A stretch of DNA of 64,000 nt from Macrostomum hystrix (taxonomy: Eukaryota; Animalia; Platyhelminthes), in the NCBI GenBank assembly GCA_950097015.1, contig CATNEN010000015.1, positions 1,240,001 through 1,304,000 of the forward strand, written 5' to 3'. The translations under genes and the position numbers were made by a program. Each line of letters opens with the position of its first letter. Position 1 is the stretch's first letter. A model generated the notes under the pieces. The model made no database searches. It worked only from the letters and a program-made list of their open reading frames with translations, and had not been told where the DNA came from. This document shows, piece after piece, positions 5,721 to 38,530 of the stretch.

Positions 5721-6172
5721 TCACAGCTCCAGCAGAAGCCGCACTGAGCGGAGAGTCAAAGCCCCGGAGCCTGAGTTCCATATCATGTAGCTCGCGCGTG
5801 TTGTCTGTCCTGAAGGATATAGTCCGTTTGGATAGAAATGGTGGCATTCGTTGAACCACCACCCACCCTTGCCCCAAATATTCGAGCACGATCCGTCAAT
5901 GAAGAGTCCTTCAATTTCGGGTTCCAGGGCTGAGGCTTTGTCGTTGTCGTTGTCGAAAGTGGAGAAGCGCGCTCCTTTGCTCTTCTCCATAGCATCGAAT
6001 TCGACATTGGACCTCTTCCTCAGCATCTCTCGGTACGTCATCTCATATTTGGTGCTGGCGTTTCCCACCTGGAATCCAGCATACTCAGCATGCAGCTCAG
6101 TCCCATTCCACAGCTCCATCTCCACTCTGAGTGTGGTACCGCCAGCGCTCAGCGAGTGGATGGCGGAGAGAC
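5721..6172 (-). CDS. FReD family copy 1, exon 4 (fibrinogen C-terminal domain, C-terminal part)
   Basis: Acceptor CCCGCAG|GT. Translation LSAIHSLS...LRVEMELWNG...YAGFQVG...RFSTFDNDND...CSNIWGKGGWWFNECHHFYPNG follows the FBG consensus. Confidence 0.85.
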
Positions 6173-6866
6173 CTGCGGGATCGGACAGAAGTCAAAGGCG
6201 CTGATGTGAATGGCCAGATTTAGCTGACAATCGATAAACAAATTGTAACACTGCAATAAATTGTAACAAGGTAACACTTGTATTCTCACATCGAAATTCT
6301 ACCAGCTGTCTGATGATCAAATTCATACAATCTGAGTTTTTCTGTTCAACTGGAACAAACCTGTTTTCGAGAAAACTTGTTTTCTAATACAAGTCCCTGA
6401 GAACTCAAAAGTTATTAGATTTAGAGAGTCCATTGAAGATGTACCTATAAGTCAGGTCTAAAGACCCACAGATCCAATTAAGTTTCCTGTGCTCCAGAAA
6501 GCAAAAGGCAACCACCCATCTTCAGCACCCAGTTGCCTCCCCTAAATGCAACAAATGGGCTAGACAATTCTCGCCGCATGGGCAGTCCGTTTCATTATTT
6601 CATCATGAGGTCGACCTCACTAAAAATGGGTCAAACCATCTGGCTTGTCAGCCGATTGCTGCACTCTTCTCCGGACTGTTCTTGCAAGAGATTGATTGTT
6701 GAAATGTGATCGTCTTAATTCACCTTATTGTTTTCAACGCCTCACTTTACCAGTAAGATTGCTTTGTAACTCGCCTCGATTTAAAAGTACATCTTTCCTC
6801 CTCTCGTTCACTTCTGAATGAGATTCAGAGTTTCATTTCCGGAAAAAAACGGATAAATTTACTCAC

Positions 6867-7186
6867 CAATCCAGAAATCTGTTTCGTCGCCGAAACCCGC
6901 CTCATACTCAACCCAGGTGCGTTGGAAACTGACGTTCCCTGTGTACCTCTGCTGGATCTTGATGAAGTACTGGCCAGCCTGGTTCAGACTGAGAAACTTC
7001 GAGGAGCCTTTTAGTAAGACAGAGCGTGGGTTCATATCACAATTGAGCCCAGCCCGCTCACAAACTTCTCCAGTTCGTCTCGTCCGCGGCTCGTCCGCCT
7101 TGGCAAGGCACAGCTGACTCGTCATGGACGTCACCTGCCACCCAATCAGGCAGGACAAGTTAAGTGGCTCGAAGCTCATAGTGGGT
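6867..7186 (-). CDS. FReD family copy 1, exon 3 (linker + FBG N-terminal part)
   Basis: FIKIQQRYTGNVSFQRTWVEYEAGFGDETDFWIG. TTTCAG acceptor and G|GTGAGT donor; 320 nt keeps phase 2 to phase 1. Confidence 0.85.
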
Positions 7187-7253
7187 CTGAAAGAAAACGT
7201 TAAAAACATTTTTTATTTTTACTTTCCAAAAGAAAGTACATCTTTTCACAAAC

Positions 7254-7808
7254 CTCAGCACATGGCATTGTTTCGCGAATCTGCAGAACAACTGAAGCTG
7301 AGCAGTCTTCCAGTCTGCTGACACCCTCAGCGGACCAATTAAGAAGCGAGAACTCAAGGCCGAGCTCACAATGCTCTGAGCACTCCACAGTTTCATGAAG
7401 GTGACCGAGCGAGTAGAGAGATTAGCAAGCTGAGACCTCACAGCTTCCAATGTGGCCTCATCTTCCAGCACCAGATCCAGCTTGAGGTAGTACATGCTAC
7501 TGCTGTTGTCATACATGACTGACTCGCTACCCCAGCTGCTGATGTTGTGGCAGAGCAGAGGCTCGATGAGGAAGTGGCCAATGATGTCGAGTCTCTGGTG
7601 CACTCGAGCAGTGCAGTTCCCGAGGTTGATCGAGCGGATGAACCGCAGCTGACGGCATGCCGGAAGGGAGTATTTCTGTCTCACCTCTTTCAGATCAAAG
7701 AAGGTCTGGTTCTGCAGCATCGGGCGGTAGCTAAGTTGATGGCAGGTGTAATTCACGGTCAGCATCAGGTTATTTAATATCACTGATGGATCTGATCGAA
7801 TTTTTGAT
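7254..7808 (-). CDS. FReD family copy 1, exon 2 (second unknown N-terminal domain)
   Basis: Open 555-nt exon, TTCCGCAG acceptor, AG|GTTTGT donor. Homologous to 18430-18996 and 33806-34372. Confidence 0.8.
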
Positions 7809-7904
7809 CTGCGGAAAAGGTCGTGAGCTCCGATTTGCATTGAAGTGGGGCCAAATCGAATCTGCTCCCTACTTATCTGCACGAGCTTATTACTGGGAAC
7901 TTAC

Positions 7905-8076
7905 GCAAACTCCCCAGTGTCTTCGGCACGTGTACTTTGAAATCGGATGACACCCTTTGATTTGTTAGGGCTCCAAATGAAGCTTTTAACGTTCACTGTG
8001 CCGAAAGTGGTTTCCATGGATGCCTGGATGCTTGAAATGGTCAGGAAGCTCACTGACCTCGGTGACAGGTGCTGAA
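7905..8076 (-). pseudogene. FReD family copy 1, 3' remnant of exon 1 (signal peptide and most of domain 1 missing)
   Basis: HLSPRSVSFLTISSIQASME...FIWSP...GC|GTAAGT matches exon 1 of copies 2 and 4. Homology stops near 8075, next to a minisatellite. Confidence 0.7.
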
Positions 8077-8111
8077 CTAGCATGGCAAAACGGAAATGTA
8101 AGCTTTCATTC

Positions 8112-8490
8112 CACGGCTCAGAGCACCCCACGGTTCAGAACCCTACGGCTCAGAACCCCACGGCTCAGAGCACCCCACGGTTCAGAACCCTACGGCTCAG
8201 AACCCCACGGCTCAGAGCACCCCACGGTTCAGAACCCTACGGCTCAGAGCACCCCACGGTTCAGAACCCTACGGCTCAGAACCCCACGGCTCAGAGCACC
8301 CCACGGTTCAGAACCCTACGGCTCAGAACCCTACGGCTCAGAGCACCCCACGGCTCAGAGCACCCCACGGCTCAGAGCACCCCACGGCTCAGAACACCAC
8401 GGCTCAGAACCCCACTTCTCAGAGCACCCCACGGCTCAGAGCACCCCACGGCTCAGAGCACCCCACGGCTCAGAGCACCCCACGGCTCAG
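8112..8490. repeat. 15/18-bp compound minisatellite
   Basis: CACGGCTCAGAGCACCCC and TACGGCTCAGAACCC units. The ORFs across it are repeat artefacts. Confidence 0.9.
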
Positions 8491-10402
8491 AGCAGATTTT
8501 ATGCTTCTTGGTGACTATAAAAGGCCTGTGCTACGTGCACTCACCTTTCCGTTCTGTTTCAAGAAGTCTATTCCGCTCTCGTTTTCTCAGTTAGTACTGA
8601 GAGAGCGGTGGCGCAGTGTGTGTGAAGCCGCGCGTTGTAATCCCCTGCCTGACCGCAGCAGCCTCACTGACGAAACGTTCCATGTCGGGGAGCGCGGTCT
8701 AGATAGGCACTGGTGGTTGTGCTGAGTACGCGACCTCGACCCCGAGGATCTCGCCGTTTGGCAAAGGAGAGGTACCGATAGGATTTGTCGGACCTTCGCA
8801 GAAACCACAGACCGGCCTCAACTGCAGAGTAGTCGCGGAATTAGGCCAGCTAAGGAATAATTATTGTACTACTTGCTGTTTGGTCATCTACCTCAGTAGT
8901 ATGGGTGAGCAGAACATGGCCGACAGGGCGGAGATAGGAGGTGGGGTAATGCGTTGAGTGGGTGCGCCTATCTTTACACTGGGTACGGCCATAGACTCCT
9001 AAATAATAGCATCTGGAATGGAAGCGGAAAAATATTTTTTAACGCATGGGGCAACTTCTGTTATTTTATGCATGATTATTTAGGAGCAATTATTTAGATG
9101 CTATTGCTTAGGAGTCTATGTTACGGCTAACACAACAGAGATAGGAAGAGAGGCCGGCCTATCTCTTTGCATTTGGGATGATATGAAACTGCCGCATTAG
9201 CACTGCAGAAATACGCGGTAGTATAAAAATGTGAGACTGTGCTCACAGTCTCACCCACCCCACTCCGCTAGTCTATAAGGGTGGGGATTTTTTCTCATTA
9301 AGAGAGGAAAGCTTTGAAAAAAACTATTTCGTCGCGGAAGTTTGAACTGCTAGCATGGATCTTAGCAACATGGATCTTGAAGTACAGGAATACAAAGGCA
9401 ATAGATTCATCAGGAACTCAAGCCTGGAATCCCGGGATGTTTAACTACGCTCCAGCCGTAATTTAGCAATGTACTAGAGTTTAATAGGAATCAAATTCAA
9501 ATGTCTCCTTTGCTTTATTGTTTGGATTATGTGTCTCTACGTTTGATCACAAGACGGACAAAGTCCATGCAATATCCGTTCTTCTTTATATTGGAATGGA
9601 AAATATTTGCTACAATCCGCTCAGCTGGCCAGTTTCTCGAGTGCATCAAAGTTGCAGTCCATTTGAGTCCATTTTGATATGCTCAAAGCGCCAGCCTTTG
9701 CCCAATACAGATTGGGCAGTTCTGCATTCAGCAGGAAATCCTAGCCTTCCAAACTAACAGTGAGCAGAAAGCTGCAGTAATTGAGTGTTGGAACATAACT
9801 TTAAAGAGTAGGATGTGGAAATAGGGGGCCGGTGGCAGAGCGGTCAACGCGTTTGCCTCTCGCACCACGGTCCCTAAGTTTGATTCCACGGCGAGGCCAC
9901 ATTTACGCTCGTATTTAGGGCGCAGCCGCGCAGAGAAGGCGCAATTTACGCCTTTGACGGCCAACCTCCAAGGCACAGTGAAGTGCACACTGTCTGACGA
10001 TGAGAAAGTCAGGGCAGATGCACACACCGAAATGGGCAGAATTGCCTCCTCGCTGGCTGCGGGTCTAGTGTCACGAAATGATGTGCCATTGCCCGCAGCC
10101 CTCCTGCAATTATTATTATTATTATTAAGATGTGGAAATATTTCACTCACAAGAGCACACCCCGATGAATTCTGATAGCCGCCGAGGTGGGTCATTTACG
10201 GCTCATATGAGAAGCTTGACCAGTATTTGCGCATTTTTTAGCAGTTTGGACCGTACTTATGAAGTTTAGAGCCACCTGTGCGGGTGATGTGTCTAAAGTG
10301 TGTAAAAAGTTGTGCAAAAGTTGCTTAACTTTTCAGCGGCTCTCGAGGCTAACGCGGCCTAAAAGTTGGTCATATGTTTTTGATGGCTCAAGTACGTTTA
10401 AA

Positions 10403-10550
10403 AAGTGTCTCAAGTGGCGCAAGCTGCTCAATGGCTGGTCAAGTGTCTCAAGTGGCGCAAGCTGCTCAATGGCTGGTCAAGTGTCTTAAGTGGCGCAAGC
10501 TGCTCAATGGCTGGTCAAGTGTCTCAAGTGGCTCGCACTTCTCAATGGAT
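10403..10550. repeat. 38-bp tandem repeat x3-4
   Basis: AAGTGTCTCAAGTGGCGCAAGCTGCTCAATGGCTGGTC repeated. Confidence 0.85.
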
Positions 10551-10839
10551 GCAAAAGTATCGCAAGTGAGTTTCTGTGAGCTAATATATTTTAATCTACT
10601 TATTGCACGTAACTCTGATATGTAACACTAATATACTTTGCTATAATACCCTGCAAGGTATTTCAGTCTGCGTCATATGACTGGTTCCATGCATGGAACT
10701 ACTCCAAAACGTAGAAGTCGAACCTGCGTACACTGATCGAAGCAACACAGGTACCGAAAATATTATTACTTCAACGTACTGCACATGCATAAAGCTGTTC
10801 GAACAGTGCATAATGTCTGTGACTGTACTTAAAAGTAAT

Positions 10840-11310
10840 CCTAACTATTCGAAGCTGTTCCAAGCTACCCCATATGTATTCAACTGTACGCGAAGCGATG
10901 CGAAACTATTCGAAGCTACCCAATGTGTATTCAAGTGTACTCGAAACTATTCGAAGCTACTCAATGTGTATTCAAGTGTACTCGAAACTATTCGAAGCTA
11001 CTCAATGTGTATTCAAGTGTACTCGAAACTATTCGAAGCTACTCAATGTGTATTCAAGTGTACTCGAAACTATTCGAAACTATTCGAAGCTACCCAATGT
11101 GTATTCATGTGTACTCGAAACTATTCGAAGCTACCCAATGTGTATTCAAGTGTACTCGAAACTATTCGAAGCTACCCAATGTGTATTCAAGTGTACTCGA
11201 AACTATTCGAAACTATTTGAAGCTACCCAATGTGTATTCAAGTGTACTCGAAACTATTCGAAGCTACCCAATGTGTATTCAAGTGTACTCGAAACTATTC
11301 GAAGCTACTG
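10840..11310. repeat. 41-bp minisatellite (~11 units)
   Basis: TATTCGAAGCTACTCAATGTGTATTCAAGTGTACTCGAAAC repeated, with occasional extra TATTCGAAAC. Confidence 0.9.
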
Positions 11311-16233: not shown

Positions 16234-16899
16234 ATCTCTTAGGCTAATATCTACATTGTATTCGAGTGCAGTTGCGAGACATTTTTGGCAGCCTACTGAT
16301 CGCGCAGTCCAGCAGTCCTGTTTTGCTATCAATTCAGATCCGTAAAGAAAGAATTGTATGAACTACCAGCAGCTGATTCGGCACTACTCGGTAGTTCAAA
16401 CTAAAGGAGAGAAACCGGCACTCTGTGGCTGCGGCAGCGCTACAGGGCTCATGACGTACCAACCCCCACCGTTTGTCACAGCAGGAGCGGGGCTGCAGGT
16501 TTCTCAAACTGCACTGACTGCCTCTCTCTTAATCTCTCTTTTAATCTCTCCCACTTGGGGTGGGGTTCACACACTTGGACCCCACGGAATTTCCGCGGAT
16601 TTCCATGTGGCAGAGATCTGGTAACCCATACGACTACGAGTCCATTCTATCGTTATTGGCGTATCAGTCCGTACCCTCTTCGTGTGGCTCTAGCTGGCCT
16701 TCGAAAGCTTGAAACAAAATTAAAGTGAATTCTCACAGCGGAGTGTATTTTATATAGAATGTCGGCACGTTACACATTGTACATTGGCACACTGAACAGT
16801 CTAGAGATTAATGAAATCAATAGTCACTGACTATGCACATATTTATAGTCGTCAAGTATGCTCAGTCATCAGTCATCAAGATTTCTCAGCTGCTGCTGA

Positions 16900-17315
16900 T
16901 CACACCTCCAGCAGAAGCCGCACTGAGCGGAGAGACAGCCACTCGGAGCCTGAGAACCATGACATGTAGCTCGCGTCTGAGGACTCTCCAGGAGGAACGA
17001 GTCCGTTTGGATTGAAATTCAGGCAATTGCTGAACCACCAACCAGCCTTGCCGTAAGCATTCGAGCACGACGTCCTGGCTCTGTCATTGTCGCTGTCCAT
17101 GGTGGAGAAGCACATGCCCTTATGATTCGCGAGTGCATCGAATCCGACACTGGACCTGTCCCTCAGCATCTCTCGGTACGTCATCTCATATTTGGTGCTG
17201 GCGTTTCCCACCTGGAATCCAGCATACTCAGCATGCAGCTCAGTCCAATTCCACAGCTTCATCTCCACTCTGAGTGTAGCACCGCCTGCGCTGAGCGAGT
17301 GGATGGCGGCGAGAC
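16900..17315 (-). CDS. FReD family copy 2, exon 4 (FBG domain)
   Basis: CCCCGCAG|GT acceptor; LAAIHSLS...CFSTMDSDND...CSNAYGKAGWWFSNCLNFNPNG; 416 nt, in phase. Confidence 0.8.
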
Positions 17316-17454
17316 CTGCGGGGTCGGACAGAAGTCGGAGGCGCTGTTGTGAATGGCTTCATTTCATTTTTCCGTGAAACTGGTTTCGGTGACCGTAATA
17401 TGTGTATATTCTAGAGTGAAAAATAATAAATAATATTTTATTTTAAGGCATCTG

Positions 17455-17597
17455 AAGGCTGGGTACGGCTGTTCAGTTAATGGACTGGAAGGACGGCAGA
17501 CCCACCTTCAATTATGCCAGCTAGTGCTGTTACCTATTTAACAGCTATGTAAAATCACAAATCGTTTCAGTGGAGTCGGGAATCGAACCCCGACCTT
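17455..17597 (-). mobile_element. Truncated, diverged copy of the same SINE in intron 3 of FReD copy 2
   Basis: Shares CCCACCTTCAA...GCCAGCTAGTGCTG...TTTAACAGCT and GAGTCGGGAATCGAACCCC with 16020-16233. Confidence 0.65.
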
Positions 17598-18057
17598 CAG
17601 TAGTATAATTAGTATTATAGAGTAAAATAGCACTATTTTAGTTGTTGTATCACTCAAAAAAGCGATTCAAGTTCATTAGCATTCGCAGAAAAATCTAGAT
17701 CAAAAAGTCATGAAACCAATTCTGCGCCACTGTGATAACGAAGTTAATCTTACGCTTACATTTAAACAGAACTACTGTTGAGGTAGCTAGTTTTCTCTCA
17801 CCAAAGTTCTAATCGGCTCCTAAAATGTAAATTTTACAGCTCAACTGAAAAAAAACTGTTTTAGGGGAACCTGTCTTCTTATACAATACTTCTAAGAACG
17901 CAAAAGTCATGAAATTTTAGAGAGTCTGTTAATTATGTACCTTCCCAGGTCTGAGGAACCACACTGGCGCTCTCCACAGGTACGTTCAAATTAACCATGC
18001 TCCAAAAAGCTCAAGGCCCCATCCCATCTTGAAATAGAAACAGACGAATTCACACAC

Positions 18058-18367
18058 CAATCCAGAAGTCTGTCTTGTCGCCGAACCCCGCCTCATACTC
18101 AGCCCAGGTGCGTTGGAAACTAACGATCCCAGTGGACCTCTGCTGGATCTTGACAAAGTTCCGGCCAACCTGCTTGGCGCTGAGAAATTTCGAGGAGCAA
18201 AATCCTTTCTGCAGTACGAAGCCTGAGAGGAAATCACAAATGAACTGAGCATTCTCCACATAAACCGCGTCTCGTTCGACTTCGCAAGGCACTGCTGACT
18301 CGTTATCGACGTCGCCTGCCATCCAATGTGGCGGAACAAGTTGACTGGCTCGAAAGTTATAGTGGGT
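18058..18367 (-). pseudogene. FReD family copy 2, exon 3 with a frameshifting deletion
   Basis: 310 nt versus 335 in copy 4 and 320 in copy 1. FEPVNLFRHIGWQ and FVKIQQRSTGIVSFQRTW...DFWIG lie in different frames. Confidence 0.75.
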
Positions 18368-18429
18368 CTGAAAGAAAACGTTTAAAACTTTAAATATTTT
18401 TCTCAAAGAAGGTATATCTTTACACAAAC

Positions 18430-18996
18430 CTCAGCATATGGCACTGTTTCTCGAATCTGCAGAACAACTGCAGCTGAGCAGTCTTCCCGTCAGCCAATAC
18501 CCTAAGCGAACCGATTGAGAAGCGAGAGCTCAAGGCCGAGCTCACAACGCTCTGAGCACTCCACAGCTTCATGAAGGTGACCGAGCGTGGAGACAGATCA
18601 GTCAGTTGAGACCTCACAGCTTCCAGTGTGGCCTCATCTTCCAGCACTACATCCAGCTTGAGGTAGTACATGCTACGGCTGTAGTCAAACATGACTGACT
18701 CGCTGCTCAAGCTGCTGATGTTGTGGCAGAGCAGAGGCTCGATTAGTAAGTGGCCCTTGATGTCGAGTCTCTGGTGCACTCGAGCAGTGCATTTCTCGAG
18801 GTTGATCGAGCGGATGAACCGCAGCTGACGGCATGCTGGAAGAGAGTAATTTTGTCTCACCACTTCTGGTTCAAAGAAGGTCTGGTTCTGCAGCATCGGA
18901 CGGTAGCTGAGCTGATGGCAGGTGTCATTCACACGAGTCGATGCGGTCAGCATCAGATTGTTTAACACCATCGATGGAGCTGATCGAATTCTTGAT
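18430..18996 (-). CDS. FReD family copy 2, exon 2
   Basis: Open 567-nt exon with TTTTCCGCAG acceptor and AG|GTTTGT donor. Confidence 0.8.
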
Positions 18997-19082
18997 CTGC
19001 GGAAAACGACGTGAGCTGTGTTCCAAATCAAATCGCACTCTATTATATTCCTAGCTGAGTCAGATGATTACTGGGAACTTAC

Positions 19083-19579
19083 GCTAACGAGAAAATGTCG
19101 TCGACACTCCGACTTCGAAGTCGGATGAAACCCGTAGATTCGTCAGGGCTCCAAATGAAGCTATCAACTTGCACTGTGACGTTGTTTTCCATGGATGCTT
19201 GGATGCTTGAAATGGTCAGGAAGCTCAGAGACCTCGGTGACAGGTGCTCCAGCTGGCGCTGAGCTGCTGCGAGCATTCCAGCATCTCTGAGCAGCACAGG
19301 GATACTCAGGTACAGCACGTCAGTGACTGCGTCATACAGTGGACTCAAGCCTTCAAGCCTGTCCGTCACGCACATGACCGGCTCGACTGCCAAGTGCGGA
19401 CCGTCGCTCGCTCCCGTGTCGTGCACGAACACCGCGCAGCCGTTCACATTGAGCTGGGCCACGAAGCGGAGCTTCGGTGAGCCTGTGGCTGCGCACTGGG
19501 AGACCTGGCCAGCTGCCAGCGAGCAGAGCAGCAGAGCCAGCGCTGCAGTTTCCACAACTTGCACACTGAAGGATTTCAT
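19083..19579 (-). CDS. FReD family copy 2, exon 1 (signal peptide + first unknown domain)
   Basis: MKSFSVQVVETAALALLLCSLAAGQ leader; GC|GTAAGT donor. Confidence 0.8.
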
Positions 19580-19810
19580 TGCATTGCACAGAGATTCGGT
19601 TTGAAAGCTTCTATTTAGAATTATGCGTTTGCAGTTTGTGCAGTGTGAGGCATTCAGGACAAAGACGTGACTGAGCTACTGTTAAATACTCTCTGTTAGG
19701 CATGGGGTGATCGATGCAGCACGTGATGTTTTTGCAAGGACGGGAGGTTTGATTTGTTTTTAACCTGTGACAAACAATGTCAATAATAGCAACAGTAAAC
19801 TTCTTCAGTC
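19580..19810 (-). promoter_or_regulatory. Conserved upstream region (putative promoter/5' UTR) of FReD copy 2
   Basis: About 230 bp alignable with 34956-35210. Contains TATTTAA (minus strand, 19682-19688) about 100 bp upstream of the ATG in both copies. Confidence 0.45.
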
Positions 19811-24800: not shown

Positions 24801-25569
24801 TGTGTCCGGCAGCTCAATGACCTGGCCGATAAAAATACCGTCAGACTTCAGTGGATACCAGGGCACGCCGGTTTCCCTGGAAACGAGCTTGCTGACTACC
24901 TGGCCAAGCAGAGAGGAGCCAGCTCTGCACCGGGCCCCTCCCCACCCGGCTCCGATTCCGAGCACCGTCATTTATCGTCAGATTAATGATTGGACTGCCA
25001 ACCTCCATCTTACCCGGTGGAGAAGCATCACTAACTGCCGCCAATCCAAAGCGGCAGTTCCAGTGCCATCCACTCGGCTCCGGAAGGTTCTTCTAAACCA
25101 GACCCGGAAGGACATCCGGGCCCTCCCATGACCCTCACGGGCCATGACTGCTACGCCAGACACTGTTTCCTCCGGGAGACCTCCGGAGTGAGCTGTGCCT
25201 GTTCTGCAACCTTGAGGACGAGGATGCGCTGCACTTCGTCTGTCACTGCCCTTTCTTCACCAGAGAAAGAGGGCATCCTTTCCTTTTCAACAGAGAAAGA
25301 GGCTTAATCACCTCGGACCAAACCCATTCATGGACGAAGTTTGCAGATCCGAAAACATCCCATGGCTCGTCCGGTTCCTAAGGGCTACCAGATGAGCCTC
25401 TTTCTTCCCCAGCGAGGAACAAGCTGCAGGAAGGACCGAACACAGACCTCCCTGACTGGCCCCGCGCCATCGGCCGATTGCGGGTCTTTCAGGGATTAGC
25501 AGAATGGGCGACTCCCGCCTCCCCGCTGTGTCCGTCGGACCGCCCTGCAGATAAGTCAAGTAAGTCAAG
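21850..25569 (+). mobile_element. LOA/R1-group-like LINE: endonuclease C-terminus, RT, RNase H, CCHC knuckle, tandem-repeat tail; disrupted
   Basis: WGSSDINSRGE...NTGSTPTF...IDATL...SDH (APE). FKSPGPDGI, FRPISLTS, QHAFR, FLDIDGAFDNV, GSPQGGVFSPVLW, YGDD (RT). CYTDGS...SDSQAAL...WIPGHAGFPGNELAD (RNase H). CLFC...DALHFVCHCP. Tail (TAAGTCAAG)2 at 25552-25569. Confidence 0.9.
22986..23202. mobile_element. Solo LTR (217 bp) inserted in the LINE RT
   Basis: TGTAAT...ATGACA termini with 5-bp TSD GTTTT (22981-22985 and 23203-23207). Removing it restores GTG GTT TTT ATC CCC AAG (VVFIPK). Confidence 0.85.
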
Positions 25570-26735
25570 GCGCCATTATTAATTTGACACGCCTCAGTAG
25601 CTGTGCTTTACTCGTCGAAGGTGCCAAGCCGAAGTTCTGCCGGGCTCGTGCAGTACCCATTGCCATAGAGGAGCAAGTCAATGCGGAGCTGGACCGCTTG
25701 CAACAGCTAGGAATAATTGAACCAATCGAGGGGCCCGTGAGCGACGCATCGCCCATCATATGGGTAAAGAAAAAGGATGGGACGTTGCACATGTGCGCCG
25801 ACTACAGCGTACACATCAATGAAAAAATCAAATCCGACTCACACCCAATCCCAAATGTGAAAGTCATATTCTCTCGCTTGAAGAACGCCAAGGTCTTCGC
25901 TACGCTGGACCTTCCATCATCAACACGTCTCGTGGTTTATATCGGGTCAACAGATTGCAAATGGGGATGAAGAACGCTTCGTTCATCTTCCAGAGAACCA
26001 TGGAGGCCATCCTAGCCGAACATCAAGGGATTATATTTCTATCAAGATGACATCCTGGTTCATGCCCTAGATGCCGCTGCCCTGGAAAAGCGACTGTCCG
26101 CGGTGCGAACGCGCCTTGCTGAAAAGCGAGTCACAGTCAACGAGTCGAAATGCGTCAACTACAGCGATTCGATATCCTTTCTAGGGTTCAAAATCTCAGC
26201 CGCTGGAATTCAGCCCGACGAACGGTTGGTCGAGAAAGTCAAGCAAGTGTCCGTCCCTTCGAACAAATCGGAACTAGCCAGCTTTCTTGGACTAGTAAAT
26301 TTCTTTGGGAGGCTCATCCCGAACTTCGCCGGAAAGACTGCACCGCTAAACGAGTTAAGAAAGGCCAACGTTTCCTTTAAGTGGTCGAATGAATGCTGCC
26401 AGGCTTTTGAGAGTCTCAAAGCTGAAATCGCGAGCGCTCCAATTGTGCAACCTTACAGCCTTTCTAAGGAATTGACGCTTACAACGGATGCTTCAAAACA
26501 TTCCATAGCAGCCGTCATTACTCAGGAACGGCATCCCGTCATTTACATATCAAGTACGCTGTCATCGGCTGAATCAGGTTATTATAACATCGAACATGAA
26601 GCCCTAGCCATTTTTGGCCGTTTCACGACTGAAGCACTTCCTCCATGGCCGTCACTTTACCATCCACACCGATCACCAGCCTTTGACTCAACTTTTCCCT
26701 GGAGGTATTCCGCTCAACACGTCTGCCAGGATTAA
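25570..26735 (+). mobile_element. Ty3/Gypsy pol fragment (RT + RNase H)
   Basis: KPKFCRARAVP...ASPIIWVKKKDGTLHMCADY...FATLDL; QMGMKNAS.IFQR; FYQDDILV; FLGLVNFF; LTTDASKHSIAAV...EHEALAI. Confidence 0.9.
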
Positions 26736-26770
26736 CTAACTAACTAACTAAATAAATAAATAAATAAGCT

Positions 26771-26930
26771 AGCTGTCTCATCGTGCTCTCGGTCGTCGCT
26801 AGCTGTCTCGTCGTGCTCTCGGTCGTCGCTGGTTGTCTCTTCGTGCTATCGGTCGTCGCTGGCTGTCTCTTCGTGCCCTCGGTCGCCGCCGGCTGCCTCT
26901 TCGTGCTATCGGTCGTCGCTGGCGGTCTCT
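26771..26930. repeat. 30-bp tandem repeat x5 (possibly part of the LTR/leader of the adjacent BEL element)
   Basis: GCTGTCTCTTCGTGCTATCGGTCGTCGCTG units. Confidence 0.75.
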
Positions 26931-27162
26931 GGAAGTTCTCTACAGTCACGCGAGATTTGGGTTCACTGAAGTCTAAGCGGTGTAGCGGCCTATATTTTCA
27001 ATATAAATACTCTGCTCAGGTCGGAATTTTTTTGCTAGCACGTTCATAGTTCTTTGATTTAGCTCGTAGCTTAGAATTCTGCAACCCTCATCTATCAAAC
27101 CTGCTTCCTAATATTCGTCGCCCTTTCATTATTCTGTTTAATTGTGGGGCTGATTCGTGGTC

Positions 27163-28185
27163 ATGGCGTTAGAAGATTTAAAGAAAGATCGAGCGGTGAT
27201 GCGTCGGTCTGTATCGATGTTGGTGGACAAGGCGCAGGTGGTCATGTCAGCGAAAGAAATCAAAAGTTCGGATGATGATTCGGAGCATGTTAAGCTTCCT
27301 GAATTATAAGAAGGGACGACAGAAAGTCAAGTCTGTCCTTAAAACATGCAACACGTGCATACGTCTTCAAGGCCTGCCGTACAAGATCTCCCAAAGAGCG
27401 CAGTTACCTACGTCCCGCGCGTCACCGGGCAGGGCCTTCCAGCATAATCGAGGTGTACCATCGATTATCTCTGACAACTTCAAAACCTTCCATACGACGG
27501 CCAGGCTACTAGATGCAGAAGAAACTCCATTACGGACTCAAGCAGGTCAAGATTTTCTGAGCAGCCGCCGAGTCACCTGGACATTTATTCCCGAGCGAGC
27601 TCCATGGATGGGAGGCTTCTACGAGAAACTGATCGGCGTAGTGAAATCCGTAATTAAGAAGACAACCGGAAGGGCGTTCCTGACCTTCGAGGAGCTTTCG
27701 ACAGCAATCTGTGAGGCGGAAGCAGTTGTAAACTCAAGACCGCTTGGCTTTGTGTCTTCCAGCGAGCAATCAGAAGTCATCACGCCTGGCCATTTTCTGG
27801 TCCTGCGCCGCCTGACAAAAGAACCAGAGGAAGAAGCGCAAGTTTCCATGGTCCTGCCGCTTCCTGAAAAGCTCCGAAAGTCCAGACATTTACTGAACAA
27901 GTTCTGGAAGGAGTGGCAAGCACAGAAAATTTTGGCCCTCCGTGAGCGATCAGTCAAAGACGGTCGAACATCGAATCCGGAAATACGACCTGATGACTTA
28001 GTGTTCGTGATGGATGCCGGTTTGCCAAGACTTCAATGGAAGCTTGCGGTTGTCGAAGCGGTGCACTAGGGTCGCGATGGAATCGCCCGCTCATGCCTAC
28101 TGCGGTTAGCCAGTTCTCAAAGTGGTCGAGCGGCCACGCATCTTCGACGGCCAGTGAAGTTGCTAGTACCTCTGGAAGTCTGACG
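27163..28185 (+). mobile_element. Internally deleted BEL/Pao LTR retrotransposon (gag-like start joined to integrase + C-terminal domain)
   Basis: MALEDLKKDRAVMRRSVS (BEL gag-like start); VKSVLKTCNTC; IISDNFKTF; WTFIPERAPWMGGFYEKLI; EAEAVVNSRPL; FWKEWQ; QWKLAVV...GRDG..RSC...RRPVKLLVPLE. Confidence 0.88.
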
Positions 28186-28319
28186 TGTCGCTGGTGGTAT
28201 TTCGCTCTGTTGCTATAGCTGCGTCTAGTCGGTTTTCCTGTGTTTTTTGTCGGTGCTGGTGGCGTTTAGGCGGTTTTCGTTAGCTATCGGTGGCTGTGTG
28301 TGTCGTTCGGTGGTCGTTC

Positions 28320-29530: not shown

Positions 29531-30067
29531 CTCAGCACAAGTGCAGCTGAGCAGTCTTCCAGTCTTCCGACACCCTCAGCGGACCGATTGAGAAGCGAGA
29601 GCTCAAGGCCGAGCTCACAATGCTCTGAGCACTCCACAGCTTAATGAAGTACCGAGCGAGGATACAGATCAGCCAGCTGAGACCTCACAGCTTCCAGTGT
29701 GGCCTCATCTTGCAGCACTACATCCAGCTTGAGGTAGTACATGCTACGGCTGTAGTCATACATGACTGACTCGCTGCTCAAGCTGCTGATGTTGTGGCAG
29801 AGCAGAGGCTCGATGAGTAAGTGGCCCTTGATGTCGAGTCTCTGGTGCACTCGAGCAGTGCAGTTCTCGAGGTTGATCGAGTGGATGAACCGCAGCTGAC
29901 GGCATGCCGGAAGAGAGTACTTTTGTCTCACCTCTTCGGGATCAAAGAAGGTCTGGTTCTGCAGCATCGGGCGGTAGCTAATCTGATGGCAGGTGTCGTT
30001 CACACGAGCCGATGCGGTCAGCATCAGATTGTTTAACACCACCGATGGAGCTGATTGAATTTTTGAT
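29531..30067 (-). pseudogene. FReD family copy 3: isolated, broken exon 2
   Basis: Highly similar to exon 2 of copies 2 and 4. Small frameshifting deletion near 29650 (LYPRSVLH*) and ~28-nt deletion near 29540. No exon 1, 3 or 4 adjacent. Confidence 0.85.
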
Positions 30068-30207
30068 CTGCGGACAACGACGTGAGCTTACACAATAACT
30101 ATGGTACTTTGTGAATAAATAGACCTTTCCGGGAATCATAGCACACGCGACAAAAATTTAAAGCGAAGCAGTGGTTTCTTAGAATATAGGGAAATTGCAA
30201 TTGCATT

Positions 30208-30455
30208 CTGACAGCGCAGGTCCCTGTGTCAGTGGTCTGAAGCCAAAATAGAATTGGTTTTATTCAGTCTGACAGCGCAGGTCCCTGTGTCAGTGGTCTG
30301 AAGCCAAAATAGAATTGGTTTTATTCAGTCTGACAGCGCATGTTCCCTGTGTCAGTGGTCTGAAGCCAAAATAGAATTGGTTTTATTCAGTCTGACAGCG
30401 CATGTTCCCTGTGTCAGTGGGCTGAAGCCAAAATAGAATTGGTTTTATTCAGTCT
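30208..30455. repeat. 61-bp tandem repeat x4
   Basis: TCTGACAGCGCAGGTCCCTGTGTCAGTGGTCTGAAGCCAAAATAGAATTGGTTTTATTCAG repeated. Confidence 0.9.
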
Positions 30456-30519
30456 TACATAGATGGGAGAACTGAAATCAGCAAGCGATTCGAGGAAAGT
30501 CCTGCAGATTCCCGCCAAA

Positions 30520-30610
30520 TTTTTCGAGACCGTCCTGCTGTACAATGCCGAGTCGTGGACGCTGACAGCTACGCTGGAGCGGCAGCTGGACTCGGCGCAC
30601 TCCGGTTGTG
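30520..30610 (+). mobile_element. RTE-clade LINE fragment
   Basis: ETVLLYNAESWTLTATLERQLDSAH resembles the post-RT region of RTE elements. Confidence 0.6.
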
Positions 30611-32161
30611 TAGTGATATGTACTGACTTGCAGCAGCGCGCGTACGCTGAGTACACCGCGCTGGCAGCTGTCTGTTTAACTGCCTGACTATCAATTCATT
30701 GTTCGCGCTATTTTATCACTTCTAATCCTTGCACACAACGTGCCGTCACATAATATACGCTCGTATATATATCGCCTGTTCTCAGGAGCGTGGAGCTGTG
30801 ACTGTTTTCGTTGCCCTCGTGCACTATCACCAGTCTAGAGTTATTTCACCTTCAAAATTGATTAGCATATCATGCGAATGTGCCTGCATCAACTCCGTCT
30901 TCTGTGTCACCAACCTTTATCTAGACGGACTGAACCCCAAGGACTCAACAGGTAGAACAATGCTATTATGAACACCCTGACGCGAATTTCTCGAATTTCA
31001 CTGATCTAGCCTAAATATAACCACTCAACGCTGTTAGCAATGGGGCGCTGCCAAAAGATTTCAGGGCTGGAAGTCCCACATATTAGAAGAATGGCTTAGT
31101 AGTCCTACTCTTACAAGTGTGTTTTCAACGTATCTGCACCTGCAAAAGCAGTTGCACTTCTCGAAGGCGCAGATACTGCAGGGAATCGTTGACCTGCCCC
31201 ATGAAACCACCACTTGTTCGTCCCCATCCTGGACTCACAGGATAACAGATCCGAATCCTGGACTCACGGGATCCCAAATCGCCATTCTGGAATCCCATTC
31301 CCATATTGGGCCATCTGACGAGCTGGGGGCTGCGGGGCGGTGGGGGCGTGGGGTGGCTGGCTGCGCGGCCCGTTTTAAGCCCTTGCACTCCTACCGTTTC
31401 ACCTCTGCCGCGATTTGTTAATTTTTTCTAAATCTGTTTAATTCTCTGTTTAAATTTCTGATTCGCCAAATATACACCGCATTCGTTCCAATCCATTGGG
31501 GATCTTTTGTTCGGCCGCTGCCTGCCTTTCGCACTCGCTGTCTTCCTCGCTTTGGTCCCTCCGTTGTGTTTAATATTATTTTATTTTATTTGTTATTAGT
31601 ATTTTTCAATAAATATTTTTATACTATTATTATATTTATCGCATGCTACCCCACACCGAAATACCCATGCCAACTTGTTTTGAGAGTTCAATTCTCTCAA
31701 AATTTCGTCTCTGCAAATCACAAACGAAAATATAATAGCTAATTTTTTTAATTCTAGAAAAATTAAGGATTTTAAAGCAGTATTTGACAAGCAGTTTCAT
31801 TATACAAGTATTTGTCCCAAAATTAGCTGTGAGCTGACTTCAATAGCCGCAGATCAATACTAAAACAGGAGGGTGAATGAGCAGTGTGCGTATAATTCTG
31901 AATATATTTAATCCAATCTTACTAAATCACGCAGCAGTATGATCTCATCGAGACATTTATATTTTTGAGCTCTGACCTTTACTTCAATTGTGCATACAGT
32001 AAGGTAATTAAATTGTAATTTCCTCCTGTACTCATGCTGTTATTGTTGCAGATAAGTCAGGAAACACATTGTTACAGCACAGTGGAAATCGAGTTGCCAC
32101 TGGCTGCAGCGGAGAAGTTTGATTTCATGCGGTCCTTGGCTGATTCCTCAGCTGCTGCTGG

Positions 32162-32577
32162 TCATAGCTCCAGCAGAAGCCGCACTGAGCGGAGAGTCAA
32201 AGCCTCGGAGCCTCCTGTGCCCCATACCATGTAGCCCCAGTCTGCGGCCTCCGTAAACGGAAAGAATCCGTTTGGATTGAATTTGAGGCACCACCACCAG
32301 TAGAACCACCACCCTGCCTTGCCACGATATCTCGAGCACGATCCGTCATTGTCGCTGTCCATGGTGTAGAAGCGTGCTCCTTTGCTCTTCTCCATAGCAT
32401 CGAATTCGACATTGGACCTCTTCCTCAGCATCTCTCGGTACGTCATCTCATATTTGGTGCTGGCGTTTCCCACCTGGAATCCAGCATACTCAGCATGCAG
32501 CTCAGTCCCATTCCACAGCTTCATCTCCACTCTGAGTGTGGCACCGCCTGCGCTCAGCGAGTGGATGGCGGAGAGAC
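32162..32577 (-). CDS. FReD family copy 4 (intact), exon 4, FBG domain
   Basis: CCCCGCAG|GT acceptor; 416 nt; RFYTMDSDNDGSCSRYRGKAGWWFYWWWCLKFNPNG; stop TGA. Confidence 0.88.
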
Positions 32578-33404
32578 CTGCGGGGTCGGACAGAAGTCGG
32601 AGGCGCTGATGTGAATGGCCAGATTCAGCTGACAATCGATAAATAGATTTTGCTGTGAAACTGTTTGCGAGACAGCAATAAATAAGTAAAATAGTATATG
32701 TATAACTGGCATTTAAAACGAACTTCGAAAAATACTGCATTGTGCTCGTAGCTAATGCAGTTGCCAGAAAAAAAGCTGTAGCACAGTTTTAACACACTTG
32801 TATCACAGTTACATCACAGCTGAATCACAGTTTAATCACAGTTACATCACAGGTGTTGCTCTGGAATCTTTTCAAGCCTGAAACGCGAATTCTGGTATCG
32901 TTTTATCAGTTTTAGAAAAAACAAGAAAAATACAAATACGAGACTGACACTGATACCTATACTATAGTATCACTTTTGGTGTACTAACACTCATTATACT
33001 AGTAGCAAAGCAAGCTCATTTATAATAGCCTCATCAAAGTTCTATTCAGCTGTCGCATTATCAAATTCCAACAATCTGAGATTCAGAGCTCAACTGGAAA
33101 AAACATTAGGAGGGAACTTGTGTTTCAATACAAGCCCTCTGAGAACGCAAAGATATTTAGAGTCCATTGAAGATGTACCTACTCAGGTCTGAGGAACCAC
33201 AAGGGCGCTCTCCACAGGTACGTTCAAGGTACCCTTGCTCCAGAAAGCCCAAGGCTTTAACCCATCTGGAAAACAGTTACTGTTGCCACCAAGATTCCTT
33301 TCTCAGCTCTTTCATATCATGCACCACTTTTTCCATTTGCCTGCATGAGTTTCACAGTTGCAATACTTTAATTTCCGGAAAAAGAAACGGATGAATTCAC
33401 AAAC

Positions 33405-33739
33405 CGATCCAGAAGTCTGTCTTGTCGCCGAACCCCGCCTCATACTCAGCCCAGGTGCGTTGGAAACTGACACTCCCGGTGGTCCTCTGCTGGATCTTGA
33501 CGAAGTTCCTGCCAACCTGCTTCACGCTGAGAAACTTCGAGTAGCAAGATATTTTTTGCACTACAAAGTTTGGGAGATTACAAATGAACCAAGCCTGCTG
33601 AAACTCTGCTCCAGTTTGTCTCATTCTCCACAGAAACCGCGGCTCGTCCGACTTGGCAAGGCACAGCTGACTCGTTATTGACGTCACCTGCCATCCTATG
33701 TGGCGGAACAAGTTGACTGGCTCGAAAATTATTCCGGAC
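33405..33739 (-). CDS. FReD family copy 4, exon 3
   Basis: TTTTTAG|G acceptor, G|GTTTGT donor, 335 nt in phase; FVKIQQRTTGSVSFQRTWAEYEAGFGDKTDFWIG. Confidence 0.85.
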
Positions 33740-33805
33740 CTAAAAAAGGAAAATAAAATTGTTTGTATGTTCATTTATTCTAAGAAATTAGATCTTTACA
33801 CAAAC

Positions 33806-34372
33806 CTCAGCACATGGCATTGTTTCTCGATTCTGCAAAACAACTGCAGCTGAGCAGTCTTCCAGTCTGCAGACACCCTCAGCGGACCGATTGAAAAGCG
33901 GGAACTCAAGGAAGAGCTCACAATGCTCTGAGCACTCCACACTTTCATGAAGGTGACCGAGCGTGGAGACAGATCAGCCAGCTGAGACCTCACAGCTTCC
34001 AGTGTGGCCTCATCTTCCAGCACTACATCCAGCTTGAGGTAGTACATGCTACTGCTGTTGTCATACATGACTGACTCGCTGCTCAAGCTGTTGATGTTGT
34101 GGCAGAGCAGAGGCTCGATGAGTAAGTGGACCTTGATGTCGAGTCTCTGGTGCACTTGAGCAGTGCAGTTCCCGAGGTTGATCGAGCGGATGAACCGCAG
34201 CTGACGGCATGCCGGAAGGGAGTATTTCTGTCTCACCTCTTTCAGATCAAAGAAGGTCTGGTTCTGCAGCATCGGACGGTAGCTGAGCTGATGGCAGGTG
34301 TCATTCACACGGGTAGATGCGGTCAGCATCAGATTGTTTAACACCACCGATGGAGCTGATCGAATTCTTGAT
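33806..34372 (-). CDS. FReD family copy 4, exon 2
   Basis: 567-nt open exon, phase 2 at both ends. Confidence 0.85.
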
Positions 34373-34458
34373 CTGCGGAAAACGACGTGAGCTGTGTTCC
34401 AAATCCAATCGCACTCTATTATATTCCTAGCTGAGTCAGATGATTACTGGGAACTTAC

Positions 34459-34955
34459 GCAAACGAGAAAATGTCGTCGACACTCCGACTTTGAAGTCGG
34501 ATGAACCCCGTAGATTCGTAAGGGCTCCAAATGAAGCTATCAACTTGCACTGTGACGTTGTTTTCAATGGATGCTTGGATGCTTGAAATGGTCAGGAAGC
34601 TCACAGACCTCGGTGACAGGTGCTCCAGCTGGCGCTGAGCTGCTGCGAGCATTCCAGCATCTCTGAGCAGCACAGGGATACTCAGGTACAGCACGTCAGT
34701 GACTGCGTCATACAGTGGACTCAAGCCTTCAAGCCTGTCCGTCACGCACATGACCGGCTCGACTGCCAAGTGCGGACCGTCGCTCGCTCCCGTGTCGTGC
34801 ACGAACAGCGCGCAGCCGTTCACATTGAGCTGGGCCACGAAGCGGAGCTTCGGTGAGCCTGTGGCTGCGCACTGGGAGACCTGGCCAGCTGCCAGCGAGC
34901 AGAGCAGCAGAGCCAGCGCTGCAGTTTCCACAACTTGCACACTGAAGGATTTCAT
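34459..34955 (-). CDS. FReD family copy 4, exon 1 (signal peptide + first unknown domain)
   Basis: 497 nt, GC|GTAAGT donor. The four exons sum to 1815 nt = 604 aa + stop with no disruption. Confidence 0.85.
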
Positions 34956-35210
34956 TGGATTGCACAGAGACTTGGTTTGAAAGCTTTCTGTTTAGAACTT
35001 TGCGTTTGCAGTTTGTGCCGAGTGTGAGGCAGTCGGGACAGTCCGTGTCTGAACTACTGTTAAATACTCTCTGTTAGGTATGCGGTGATCGCTGCAGCAC
35101 CTGAAGCGTTCGCAAGGACTTGGCGGATTGGTTTTGTTTTCTAACCCATGACAAACAATTCCATCAAGTGCTGGAGTACTTTTTCAGTCCTTGTGATTGC
35201 ATTTTGGTAG
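34956..35210 (-). promoter_or_regulatory. Conserved upstream region (putative promoter/5' UTR) of FReD copy 4
   Basis: Alignable with 19580-19810; shared CTACTGTTAAATACTCTCTGTTAGG block (TATTTAA on the minus strand). Confidence 0.45.
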
Positions 35211-35407
35211 GCATAGTCAGAATGTAGTAAAAAATCATTAACATTCAACTCCACAAGGTAGCAAAGCAAAGGCAAAGCAAATAGAAGGTGAAAGAGACAG
35301 AGAAAGCGCGAGCAGCGAGGAGGGGAAGAGGATCCCAACTCCGAAAGAGGAGGGAGAAAGGGAAGAAGAGAGGTCAAAAAAGGCACAGAAGGCACAGAAA
35401 GGCAGAG

Positions 35408-35504
35408 TCAGCTAGACCGCCAGTCGCCGAGGCAGCGGATGCCGTCCACGGAGAGGCCGCTCTGGAAGGCAGCGCTGGCTTCTCCTGTGCGCAGAATGGG
35501 CGTA
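35408..35504 (-). mobile_element. Tyrosine recombinase relic (DIRS/Ngaro- or Crypton-like)
   Basis: Minus strand with one frameshift: YAHS/LRTGEASAAFQSGLSVDGIRCLGDWRSS*, matching the HxxR and GxW catalytic boxes. Confidence 0.55.
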
Positions 35505-36496
35505 CAATGAACCGTTTATTGTGAGCGCTTTATATTAGGTAATATAGAGGCAAACATTTGTTAGACTTATCATTACTTTTCTCGCTTTAAGAAAATAATA
35601 AACTATATTTACAGCACAGCTGCAAGAATTATGTTCTGCACACAGCTTCAAGCGTTGTTCATTTTCATTTTTAACATTTTTTCGAGCATTGCTTCAAGCA
35701 TTGTTCGATTCAAAACGAAATAAGTACTGTCTGAGCATGCGTAGCTGTTAGCGTTTTTTATTTCCAAAACTAAAGAAAGAGTTTCGAGCATTACGGCAAT
35801 CGTTATTAGATTCAAAACTAGGAGAAAATATTTTATGATATATGAAATGAGACATGAGATAGTTTGATTCTACAAGTGGTAGCGTGATTAGTGAAGGGCG
35901 TAGCATAAATTATTTACGGGCAAGTTGTCGAGGAAACAGCAATTATTTGTAAGGGAAGTATATTTATCGAGGGTTATGTATCATTTGTGGTAAGTTCCTG
36001 TTTTATGCTTCCTTTTTATTAAGCTCCTTTCATGTACGAGTGCTAATTATACGCTCGTAGAGTAAGAAAATAGAGCTTTTTAAGTGTCTCAGCAAGCGTT
36101 GTTCAGCATCAATTATTAATAATTAATAATTAATAATTAACAATTATACAGAGGAAGCATGATTTAGCGAGTGAAGAAAGGAATTATCGAGGGCAAAGCA
36201 TGACTTATCAACAAAATTGTATGATTTGTAGACAGGGTAGAATCAATATGGAGGTTGGTAGCATTTATTAACGAGCGGAAGTATGAAATAAAGTATGAAT
36301 TATCAGAAATGTAGAAATAATCAACGGTGTAGCCTGTTGATTATCGTGGGAAAAGCATAAATTAAGTGGGTGGCATACATTTTTTTCAGCGGAAAGCAAG
36401 ATTTGTCCAGGGATAGCATGATATAACAAATTGGTAGCATAAATTATTGAGGGGAAAGCATAGATTATCCAAGAGAAAGCTAGAAATATCGACGAT

Positions 36497-36600
36497 GCCA
36501 CTTTGACAGCCTTCTCAGCCATTCCATTAGACTGCGCATAACCTGGAGACGTTCGCGTGTGTCGGAAACGAAACTCAGCAGCAAACTCATGAAACCGTAA
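36497..36600 (-). mobile_element. Second copy of the Gypsy integrase fragment (inverted relative to 21640-21790)
   Basis: Reverse complement shares TTTCATGAGTTTGCTGCTGAGTTT...CTCCAGGTTATGCGCAGTCT.ATGGAATGGCTGAGAAGGCTGTCAAAGTGGC. Confidence 0.65.
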
Positions 36601-38138
36601 TATGGTAGCATGAGAGAGAGAACACTATAGCATGTACACCTAGACTGGTGTACAAACTTGTGCACAAACGCTATACTCATGACAAAAACTGCAGCATTTA
36701 TATTGTCAAACTGTCACAACTTTGATCATTGTGTTTCTTTCTTTTCATCTAGCTCCGAAGTACTTTTATTATTTTGCAGAATGCTGTTTGAATTTCAGCA
36801 TCAGTTTTGTTACTGCTTCTTTTTCTCCTAATCTTTTATCATCAACAGTTAAAAAGTAAAGTTCCTAATAATTATTCTTTTATTTATTCGATATATTTGG
36901 GTTTCAGTGTAGGTTGTAAGCGTTTGTTTTTTAGCTGATGTCAAAGCAAATATTTGTTTGTTTCATAATTACTATTCTCGCTATGATAAAAAAAGAAAAA
37001 AAGAGAAAATAATAATTATTTTGGTTGGCATTTTTTGGTTTGAGTATAAGTTGTAAGCGCTTTTGGTTAAATATTTCAAAGCAAATATTTGTTAGTTTCA
37101 TAGTTGAAAGAATGAAAAAAAGAAAAAAATAATTATTTTGGTTGGCATTTTTTGGGTTTGAGTTTAACTTGTAAGCGTTTTTGGTTAATTATTTCAAAGC
37201 AAATATTTGTTTGCTTTATAATTACTCTTCTTGCTGTGAGAAAGGAATGTACGCTTTTCGAGTGCAGCAGCAAGTCTTCTTCGATACTAAGACTATGGAA
37301 AGTTTTCTGAGAATACCTGCAAGCGTTATCAGAATCAGAAGTGGAAGAAAATATGTGGAGCACAGCTAAAAGCGTTATTGATTACATTTTCGAATTTGTT
37401 TCGAGCATTGCTTTAAGCGTTGTTCGATTCGAAATGTAGACTTTTCGAGCATGTGTAGCTTTTAGCGTTTGTTTCAAAACTAACGAAAAAGTGTTTCAAA
37501 CATTGCTGCAATCGTTACTAGATTCAAAACTAGGAGAAAGTGTTTTAATCGGAGCAAATAGCATTATTATATTAAAAACAGAGAGTTTTTCGATCAGGGA
37601 AGCAATAATTCTTTACATTTTAAAAGCACAATGATTCGAATGAAACTTAGGAACATAGCGCTAGATATCAATGGATAGCATGCATAAGATATCAAGAAAA
37701 TGGCATTCAATTCGTAGAAAAAAAATCTTTAGATATCTAGGGAATATCTAGATATCTTCCAGTGTAATTCAATCCAAAACTAAATGAAGACTGATCCAGC
37801 AGGCGTAGCTGTTAGCGTTATTTTACTTTCAGAATTTCTCAGTTTTTCATATTTAGCATGTAAATTGCACACAATTTGTGGGGAAAGGCACTACGAGTAC
37901 GAGCCGTAGATATCTAGGTAATGTCTTGACATCTTGAAGAGATTGTATGAGATTTCCATGTAACAGCATAATACTTTCAGGGTAATTTTTTAAAGACGAT
38001 AGAATGATTTATTAAAGAGGGTAGCATAATTTATCAAACGGTTACATTGATTAACGGGAAGCATTTAAAGAGGATAGAATGATTTTTTCAGGGGAAGCAT
38101 GAATTATCGACGGTGTAGCAAAAATTACGGTATCGCAT

Positions 38139-38530
38139 CCATTTGCGCTGGAAGCTCACAGTCCCAGTGAGTCGCTACTGAATCTTTACAAAGCCTCTGC
38201 CGTCACGCCTGACTAGAAGCACTTCAGCTTCAGAGATCGGACCGCAGTGAGAAGAGCAGCACAGCTTGAGGCACTGCTTGAGACTTGAGCAGCTGACTGC
38301 TCCCACGGATGGCTTCATGGACAAGCAGCTGATGGCAGCTGTGTGTCTTGATGGACTTTGTTTTTCTAGTCTGTTGACAATTCCGCATTACTTCGTTATT
38401 CTTTTTTCCCCAATGCCAACATCGCTGTATTCTGTATCACGGACTACTCATTATCTACTAGTGGTTCTTGTTCTGTATCTGCCACCAATTTCGCGGTTAT
38501 GGAGTCTGGTCGGCTCCGAAGTGAGGACCA
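38139..38530 (-). pseudogene. FReD family locus 5: strongly diverged exon 3 relic
   Basis: Minus strand VLLVRRDGRGFVKIQ*RLTGTVSFQRKW (TAG at 38175-38177) matches GRNFVKIQQRTTGSVSFQRTW. Weaker match SEPTRLHNREIG/WQI to FEPVNLFRHIGWQV near 38480-38525. Confidence 0.65.

Follow-up and report, generated by a model that had tools for sequence, protein, structure and literature searches.

The flatworm Macrostomum hystrix carries a gene for a predicted secreted protein in which two head-to-tail copies of a module, itself belonging to no named domain family, precede a C-terminal fibrinogen-related (FBG) domain. The gene occupies 32162–34955 on the minus strand of the stretch analysed here (the window: 64,000 nucleotides, positions 1,240,001 to 1,304,000 of contig CATNEN010000015.1, assembly GCA_950097015.1), where it is the one intact member of five related loci. 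The gene, its architecture and the module's lack of a named family are, taken jointly, well supported, and we hold them with high confidence. That the window contains a portion of a tandem Macrostomum gene cluster encoding secreted, modular proteins of lectin type is the reading we favour, with distinctly less assurance.

Reading the sequence of 32100–35000 resolves four exons with GT..AG at every intron, whose lengths sum to 1,815 nt (604 codons plus stop, counted from the coordinates in Table 1), in agreement with the preliminary description of this DNA. Parts of the gene region are present in eight public runs, and the contigs of four runs were aligned to it. The contigs behave as RNA, with zero depth across all three introns, and every intron is supported by a spliced joint: the joints are exact at 34372/34459, 33739/33806 and 32577/33405 (the latter two equally readable two places earlier, as 33737/33804 and 32575/33403). 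Run X5 provides one contig covering exons 1 and 2 and another covering exons 2 and 3 with 26 bases of exon 4, both with zero mismatches to the locus, and contigs from runs of two other organisms are 95–99% identical to the gene. The transcripts thus link exons 1 and 2 to the FBG exons, one of the points on which the preliminary description had staked its model. One contig of run X2 (another organism) does not use 34459 but joins 34372 to 34462 with GCT between, a 3-nt variant of the exon 1 end in a relative. At the transcript 5′ end (minus strand), contigs of two runs continue upstream past 34996 with 7–16 non-genomic bases before the adapter, beside an AG at 34999–34998. The 16 non-genomic bases match nowhere in the window, and these extra bases might come from a trans-spliced leader or from a remote 5′ exon. 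Within the predicted protein, a hydropathy scan finds a sole hydrophobic stretch (residues 4–22). The protein contains seven N-x-S/T sequons, and 14 Cys lie in its mature part. The N-terminal hydrophobic stretch and the sequons fit a secreted glycoprotein.

Sequence searches with this gene were run per exon peptide (34461–34955, 33808–34371, 33406–33738 and 32165–32575, all minus strand), and public homologues from Macrostomum lignano served as full-length stand-ins for the 604-codon gene in searches and folding. Comparing exon peptides with the window by tblastn aligns the two module cores, previously named A1 and A2, at 34–37% identity over ~94 residues (E 4e-14 to 6e-14), and the proposed homology between them holds at E ~1e-14. 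The true unit is larger, at ~190–195 residues and not the ~90–130 of the first reading: a 196-position hidden Markov model (HMM) tiles six contiguous copies in proteins P0002, P0014 and P0015, and two copies each in ~20 FBG proteins, with almost no linker between copies. Module 1 extends from exon 1 into the first 26–50 residues of exon 2, and module 2 from exon 2 into the first 26–45 residues of exon 3. The earlier placing of the modules on separate exons is therefore right for their cores but not for whole modules, each of which carries on into the following exon for ~40–50 residues. Phase 2 is shared by introns 1 and 2, which interrupt the module at the same alignment column, a position that falls inside helix 3 in the numbering of the AlphaFold2 model described below. 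Since exon 2 is a phase 2–2 cassette that combines the end of one module with the core of its successor, its duplication would add exactly one module.

Six Cys columns (C1 to C6) stand out across 35 full-length modules, correcting the earlier count of two per module to as many as six. Cys C2 and C3 are both present in 28 of these modules and both missing from 7, with no module holding one alone; C4 and C5 behave likewise (both in 22, neither in 13). For C1 and C6, 26 modules have both, 5 the first only, 1 the second only and 3 neither. Because these pairs co-occur across modules, three disulfides are predicted: the pattern points to C2–C3 and C4–C5, and C1–C6 is probably a clasp joining both ends of the module. 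Such a disulfide pattern is typical of extracellular modules. Divergence between module classes is wide (17–36% identity). An invariant E-P pair looks structural, and no conserved pocket motif is seen in the modules beyond it.

Searches by sequence and by fold return no characterised domain for this module, bearing out the earlier statement that it was unrecognised. Pfam gives no match on exons 1 and 2, and none of 39 module copies matches any Pfam family, Ig families included; exon 2 has a weak PH_19 match that misses the cut-off (E 0.019), is present in only 1 of the 39 and was rejected. Profiles of both modules searched against PDB sequences find nothing below E 0.85. AlphaFold2 prediction of one M. 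lignano module (P0001:233–437, the homologue of module 2), from a 39-row module alignment, gives a confident model (predicted local distance difference test, pLDDT, 87.8; predicted template-modelling score, pTM, 0.80; residues 10–180 above 88). The modelled elements run in the order five strands, helix, two strands, short helix, two strands, long helix, two strands, and the predicted module contains four helices in a mixed α/β order. Foldseek comparison of this model with the PDB has a best E of 0.06, with Fab and nanobody noise at template-modelling (TM) scores ≤0.22, and a shape search of the ESM Atlas reaches TM ≤0.35, with no convincing neighbour. A feature search of the ESM Atlas with module 1 (best score 0.84) led to unrelated bacterial clusters and was set aside as noise. 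As neither curated families nor solved structures give a significant match, the N-terminal module can be assigned to no named domain family. The only structural neighbour found comes from BFVD, an uncharacterised 417-residue Medusavirus stheno T3 protein (A0A7S7YF07; Foldseek E 1.3e-4, probability 1.00, TM 0.53 by query over 180 columns; next match TM 0.11). The two share 16% identity, undetectable by sequence, and both structures are predictions; we treat the likeness as a lead only, which may reflect common descent, transfer or convergence.

The C-terminal part is recognisable as an FBG domain. Pfam PF00147 (Fibrinogen_C, gathering cut-off 22 bits) matches exon 3 with 31.2 bits (E 2.5e-7; peptide residues 64–111, model positions 28–77) and exon 4 with 55.8 bits (E 7.5e-15; model positions 81–210), and the M. 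lignano homologues reach up to 128 bits. Against solved structures, exon 4 finds ficolin-3 best (E 1.5e-8), together with fibrinogen gamma and angiopoietins (angiopoietin-1). Its DSDND aligns with DADHD/DNDND of solved FBG domains, keeping the DxDxD calcium-site motif, and the Cys pair of the P subdomain is in place (exon-4 residues 80 and 96). By Pfam score and by homology to solved FBG domains, the encoded protein belongs among the FReD/FBG proteins. In the window gene the Pfam match begins at model position 28, leaving approximately the first 27 positions (the N-terminal A subdomain) unmatched; in the M. lignano homologues it begins at 36–40.

The module appears to be confined to Macrostomum. 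A profile built from six window copies, searched against 1.84 billion representative proteins, retrieves 11 proteins at E ≤0.001; all named hits are M. lignano, and the others are one Logan transcript contig (run SRR30276812) and one JGI metagenome contig. A second protein search with a 39-row profile finds only M. lignano fragments. In the proteins searched, the module is thus restricted, as judged by sequence, to Macrostomum or to unnamed contigs. Within this range it is used in several architectures. Two modules with an FBG domain (~600 aa) account for 19 or more M. lignano clusters at 90% identity, one module precedes FBG in P0009 (452 aa), and six modules precede a C-type lectin domain in P0002 (1,462 aa), whose signal peptide is followed by a mucin-like repeat rich in Thr, Ser and Pro, and in P0014 and P0015 (~1,437 aa). 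The six-module C-type lectin protein is carried by a 4,758-nt transcript contig. The 35 modules of the M. lignano and Logan proteins can be aligned with the window exons, and in the window gene two modules precede FBG. The same HMM places M. lignano A0A1I8GLB1/PAA89839.1 (two modules and FBG), PAA70159.1 (one and FBG) and PAA78696.1 (six and C-type lectin) in the same family; the M. lignano homologues are at most 60–73% identical to the window exons and represent another species or diverged paralogues. The family had been thought possibly undescribed. This stands for the module, which is unannotated and for which we found no paper, but not for the proteins that carry it: databases already contain M. 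lignano members under the names 'Fibrinogen C-terminal domain-containing' or 'hypothetical' protein, with annotation confined to their FBG or C-type lectin part.

The closest parallel in architecture lies in snails. Biomphalaria FREPs combine immunoglobulin superfamily (IgSF) domains with FBG and CREPs combine IgSF with a C-type lectin; these VIgLs are encoded by clustered multi-copy genes (PMC10075465). The Macrostomum proteins share with them the order of signal peptide, N-terminal module(s) and an FBG or C-type lectin head, predicted secretion, and clustered multi-copy genes. They differ in the module, which is a non-Ig, ~190-residue predicted α/β fold with helices, and in its number before the C-type lectin (six, against one or two in the snail form). 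The one or two IgSF domains before FBG that mark the snail type are lacking: no Pfam Ig match occurs in any of the 39 copies, and the Foldseek matches to Fab structures stay at TM ≤0.22. The Macrostomum family is therefore an analogue of FREP/CREP and not a member. The FREP-like architecture suggested at the outset is strengthened by finding the same module before a C-type lectin (six copies) and before FBG (single copy). Ficolins, tachylectin-5 and angiopoietin-type lectins share the homologous C-terminal FBG domain, with ficolin-3 the best solved relative. Unlike them, the Macrostomum protein has no collagen-like or coiled-coil N-terminal part (no Gly-X-Y run is present in the exon translations, and there is no Pfam Collagen match); it also departs from them in the ~27 unmatched Pfam start positions and in the unusual P subdomain of the intact copy.

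Searching with exon peptides (tblastn) confirms that all five loci of the preliminary description are real, although only the gene at 32162–34955 is intact (Table 1). In the four-exon paralogue at 16888–19591, the net loss of 25 nt shifts the frame of exon 3, and this locus is probably a pseudogene. Just upstream of the exon-1 remnant at 5709–8073, approximately where the missing two thirds would lie, is a 17-nt tandem repeat of ~24 copies (8111–8494). Divergence between the loci is mosaic. Exon 1 is 96–100% identical, exon 2 88–97% and the first half of exon 4 94–100%, whereas the second half of exon 4 (the P subdomain; 32162–32400 versus 5739–5960 and 16948–17130) is 67–82% identical with many small compensating indels, so that no coding stretch has diverged more; intron 3 can hardly be aligned. 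Between the intact copy and its neighbour, synonymous divergence (dS) is 0.008 in exon 1 and 0.16 in exon 2. Exon 1 differs there by six non-synonymous changes and one synonymous change, and the ratio of non-synonymous to synonymous divergence (dN/dS) in exon 2 is 0.28–0.39, by which measure exon 2 is under purifying selection. This mosaic fits segmental gene conversion combined with fast change in the presumed ligand-binding (P) subdomain.

Table 1. Exons and modules of the intact gene, and related loci, in window coordinates.
Feature	Position	Strand	Description
Exon 1	34459..34955	-	ATG at 34955; N-terminus resembling a signal peptide (residues 1-24), then core of module 1; phase 2 at its end
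Exon 2	33806..34372	-	567 nt; symmetric phase 2-2 cassette; tail of module 1 (to Cys C6) and core of module 2
Exon 3	33405..33739	-	Tail of module 2 (C6 is peptide residue 26), short linker, start of FBG
Exon 4	32162..32577	-	Remaining FBG, including DSDND calcium-site-like motif and variable P subdomain; stop codon 32164-32162
Module 1, C1 to C6	34294..34871	-	Protein residues ~29-192; split by intron 1; lacks the C4-C5 pair
Module 2, C1 to C6	33661..34209	-	Protein residues ~221-381; split by intron 2; all six Cys
Paralogous locus, four exons	16888..19591	-	Exon 3 with 28-nt deletion and 3-nt insertion
Paralogous locus	5709..8073	-	Exons 2-4 open; last 166 nt of exon 1 only; lacks start codon, signal peptide and first two thirds of exon 1
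Lone exon-2 copy	29537..30079	-	2-nt deletion; pseudogene fragment
Exon-3-like fragment (linker and FBG start)	38106..38381	-	In-frame stop

We propose that the mature protein would consist, after a cleavable signal peptide, of two head-to-tail α/β modules and a C-terminal FBG domain, the modules being braced by up to three disulfides (C1–C6, C2–C3 and C4–C5). The FBG head would be the ligand-binding part, for carbohydrate or acetyl groups, and the modules would form a rigid glycosylated stalk that presents this head and possibly multimerises the protein; new modules would arise by duplication of one symmetric phase 2–2 exon. We arrive at a stalk because the same module is a copy-number-variable scaffold for two lectin heads unrelated to each other, FBG being preceded by one or two copies and the C-type lectin by six. 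This stalk or presentation role is plausible, if rather short of an even call, and an immune role for the protein is more tentative by a small step. Several points weigh against the proposal. With four of the five window loci broken, part of this local cluster is in decay. In the intact copy the P subdomain has an unusual sequence (GWWFYWWWC), and the FBG head may bind a non-sugar ligand, or nothing. The signal peptide was called by eye and by hydropathy scan, not by a dedicated predictor. The module structure is a prediction from a 39-row alignment whose rows come largely from one species. A full-length AlphaFold2 model of M. lignano P0001 from a 26-row alignment is poor (pLDDT 54.5, FBG part <50); it was set aside for quality and used only for strand and helix order, which is the same in both of its modules as in the single-module model. 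Our literature search found no paper on this family, on the M. lignano gene identifiers, or linking Macrostomum with FBG lectins.

The modules might themselves be the recognition domains, as proposed for the IgSF of snail FREPs, turning the protein into a bridging molecule of two specificities. The wide differences between module classes speak for this, six different modules in one protein could give several binding surfaces, and CREP IgSF-like sequences that adhere to parasites have been mentioned (PMC10075465). Within the window, however, divergence is distributed the other way: the modules are the conserved part (exons 1 and 2), exon 2 is constrained, the P subdomain of FBG has changed most among coding stretches, and the E-P pair is not accompanied by any conserved pocket motif, so we consider it unlikely that the modules do the recognising. 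Somewhat less unlikely, in our estimation, is a non-immune gland secretion (seminal fluid, mucus, adhesive or egg-shell matrix), in which lectin heads would cross-link glycoproteins and the modules would act as matrix spacers. The family is lineage-restricted, tandemly amplified and fast-turning-over, a pattern also typical of gene families with reproductive or secretory roles, and the mucin-like repeat of P0002 would suit such a product. Known Macrostomum adhesive proteins also contain lectin-type domains, yet the paper on Macrostomum adhesion makes no mention of this family, its sole use of 'fibrinogen' being unrelated (PMC6410801). The mechanism of a gland secretion overlaps our stalk-and-head proposal, from which only the biological setting differs.

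Decay of the surrounding loci raises the further question of whether the intact copy is transcribed but functionally dead, its open frame that of a recent survivor. Its broken neighbours, the six non-synonymous changes against one synonymous in exon 1 and a P subdomain that is aberrant relative to the paralogues speak for such a reading. We nevertheless judge this improbable, the least probable of these alternatives: four exons remain open over 604 codons with canonical splice sites, spliced transcripts match the locus exactly, exon 2 has a dN/dS of ~0.3, full-length homologues are kept in M. lignano in the clusters counted above, and closely matching contigs recur in the runs of two further organisms. 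Returning to the stalk-and-head proposal, a bolder version would see in Macrostomum its own variable lectin system, built on a lineage-specific, disulfide-braced non-Ig fold whose sole detectable structural relative is a giant-virus protein, with modules added by exon duplication, interchangeable heads and diversifying ligand-binding subdomains, the rest being homogenised by gene conversion, and convergent with FREP/CREP. We offer this version as speculation, and rate it no higher than recognition by the modules themselves.

Elsewhere in the window, a degraded retroelement lies between two of the paralogous loci (22510–28069, plus strand), with RVT_1, RNase H, RT_RNaseH_2 and DUF5641 on separate open reading frames (ORFs). 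Two adjoining satellites follow, a 20-nt unit repeated ~145 times (39942–42839) and a 29-nt unit repeated ~640 times over 18.5 kb (42846–61394), of strongly skewed composition. At the other end of the window, a 180-aa ORF (288–830, plus strand) encodes a WSC carbohydrate-binding-type domain (Pfam 2.9e-14) and may belong, as one exon, to a different gene for a secreted protein.

Little is known of innate recognition in flatworms, and the laboratory model Macrostomum is open to RNA interference and transgenesis. The module described here is a genus-restricted, confidently modelled extracellular domain with no family name and no solved look-alike, serving as a scaffold of variable copy number for two lectin heads; it is a candidate for entry into Pfam or InterPro as a new domain family and a good target for structure determination. 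It also provides an example of how duplication of one symmetric exon adds a whole domain although the introns sit inside the domain. For the biology of the genus, the family offers a testable case of convergent 'module plus lectin head' recognition proteins outside molluscs.

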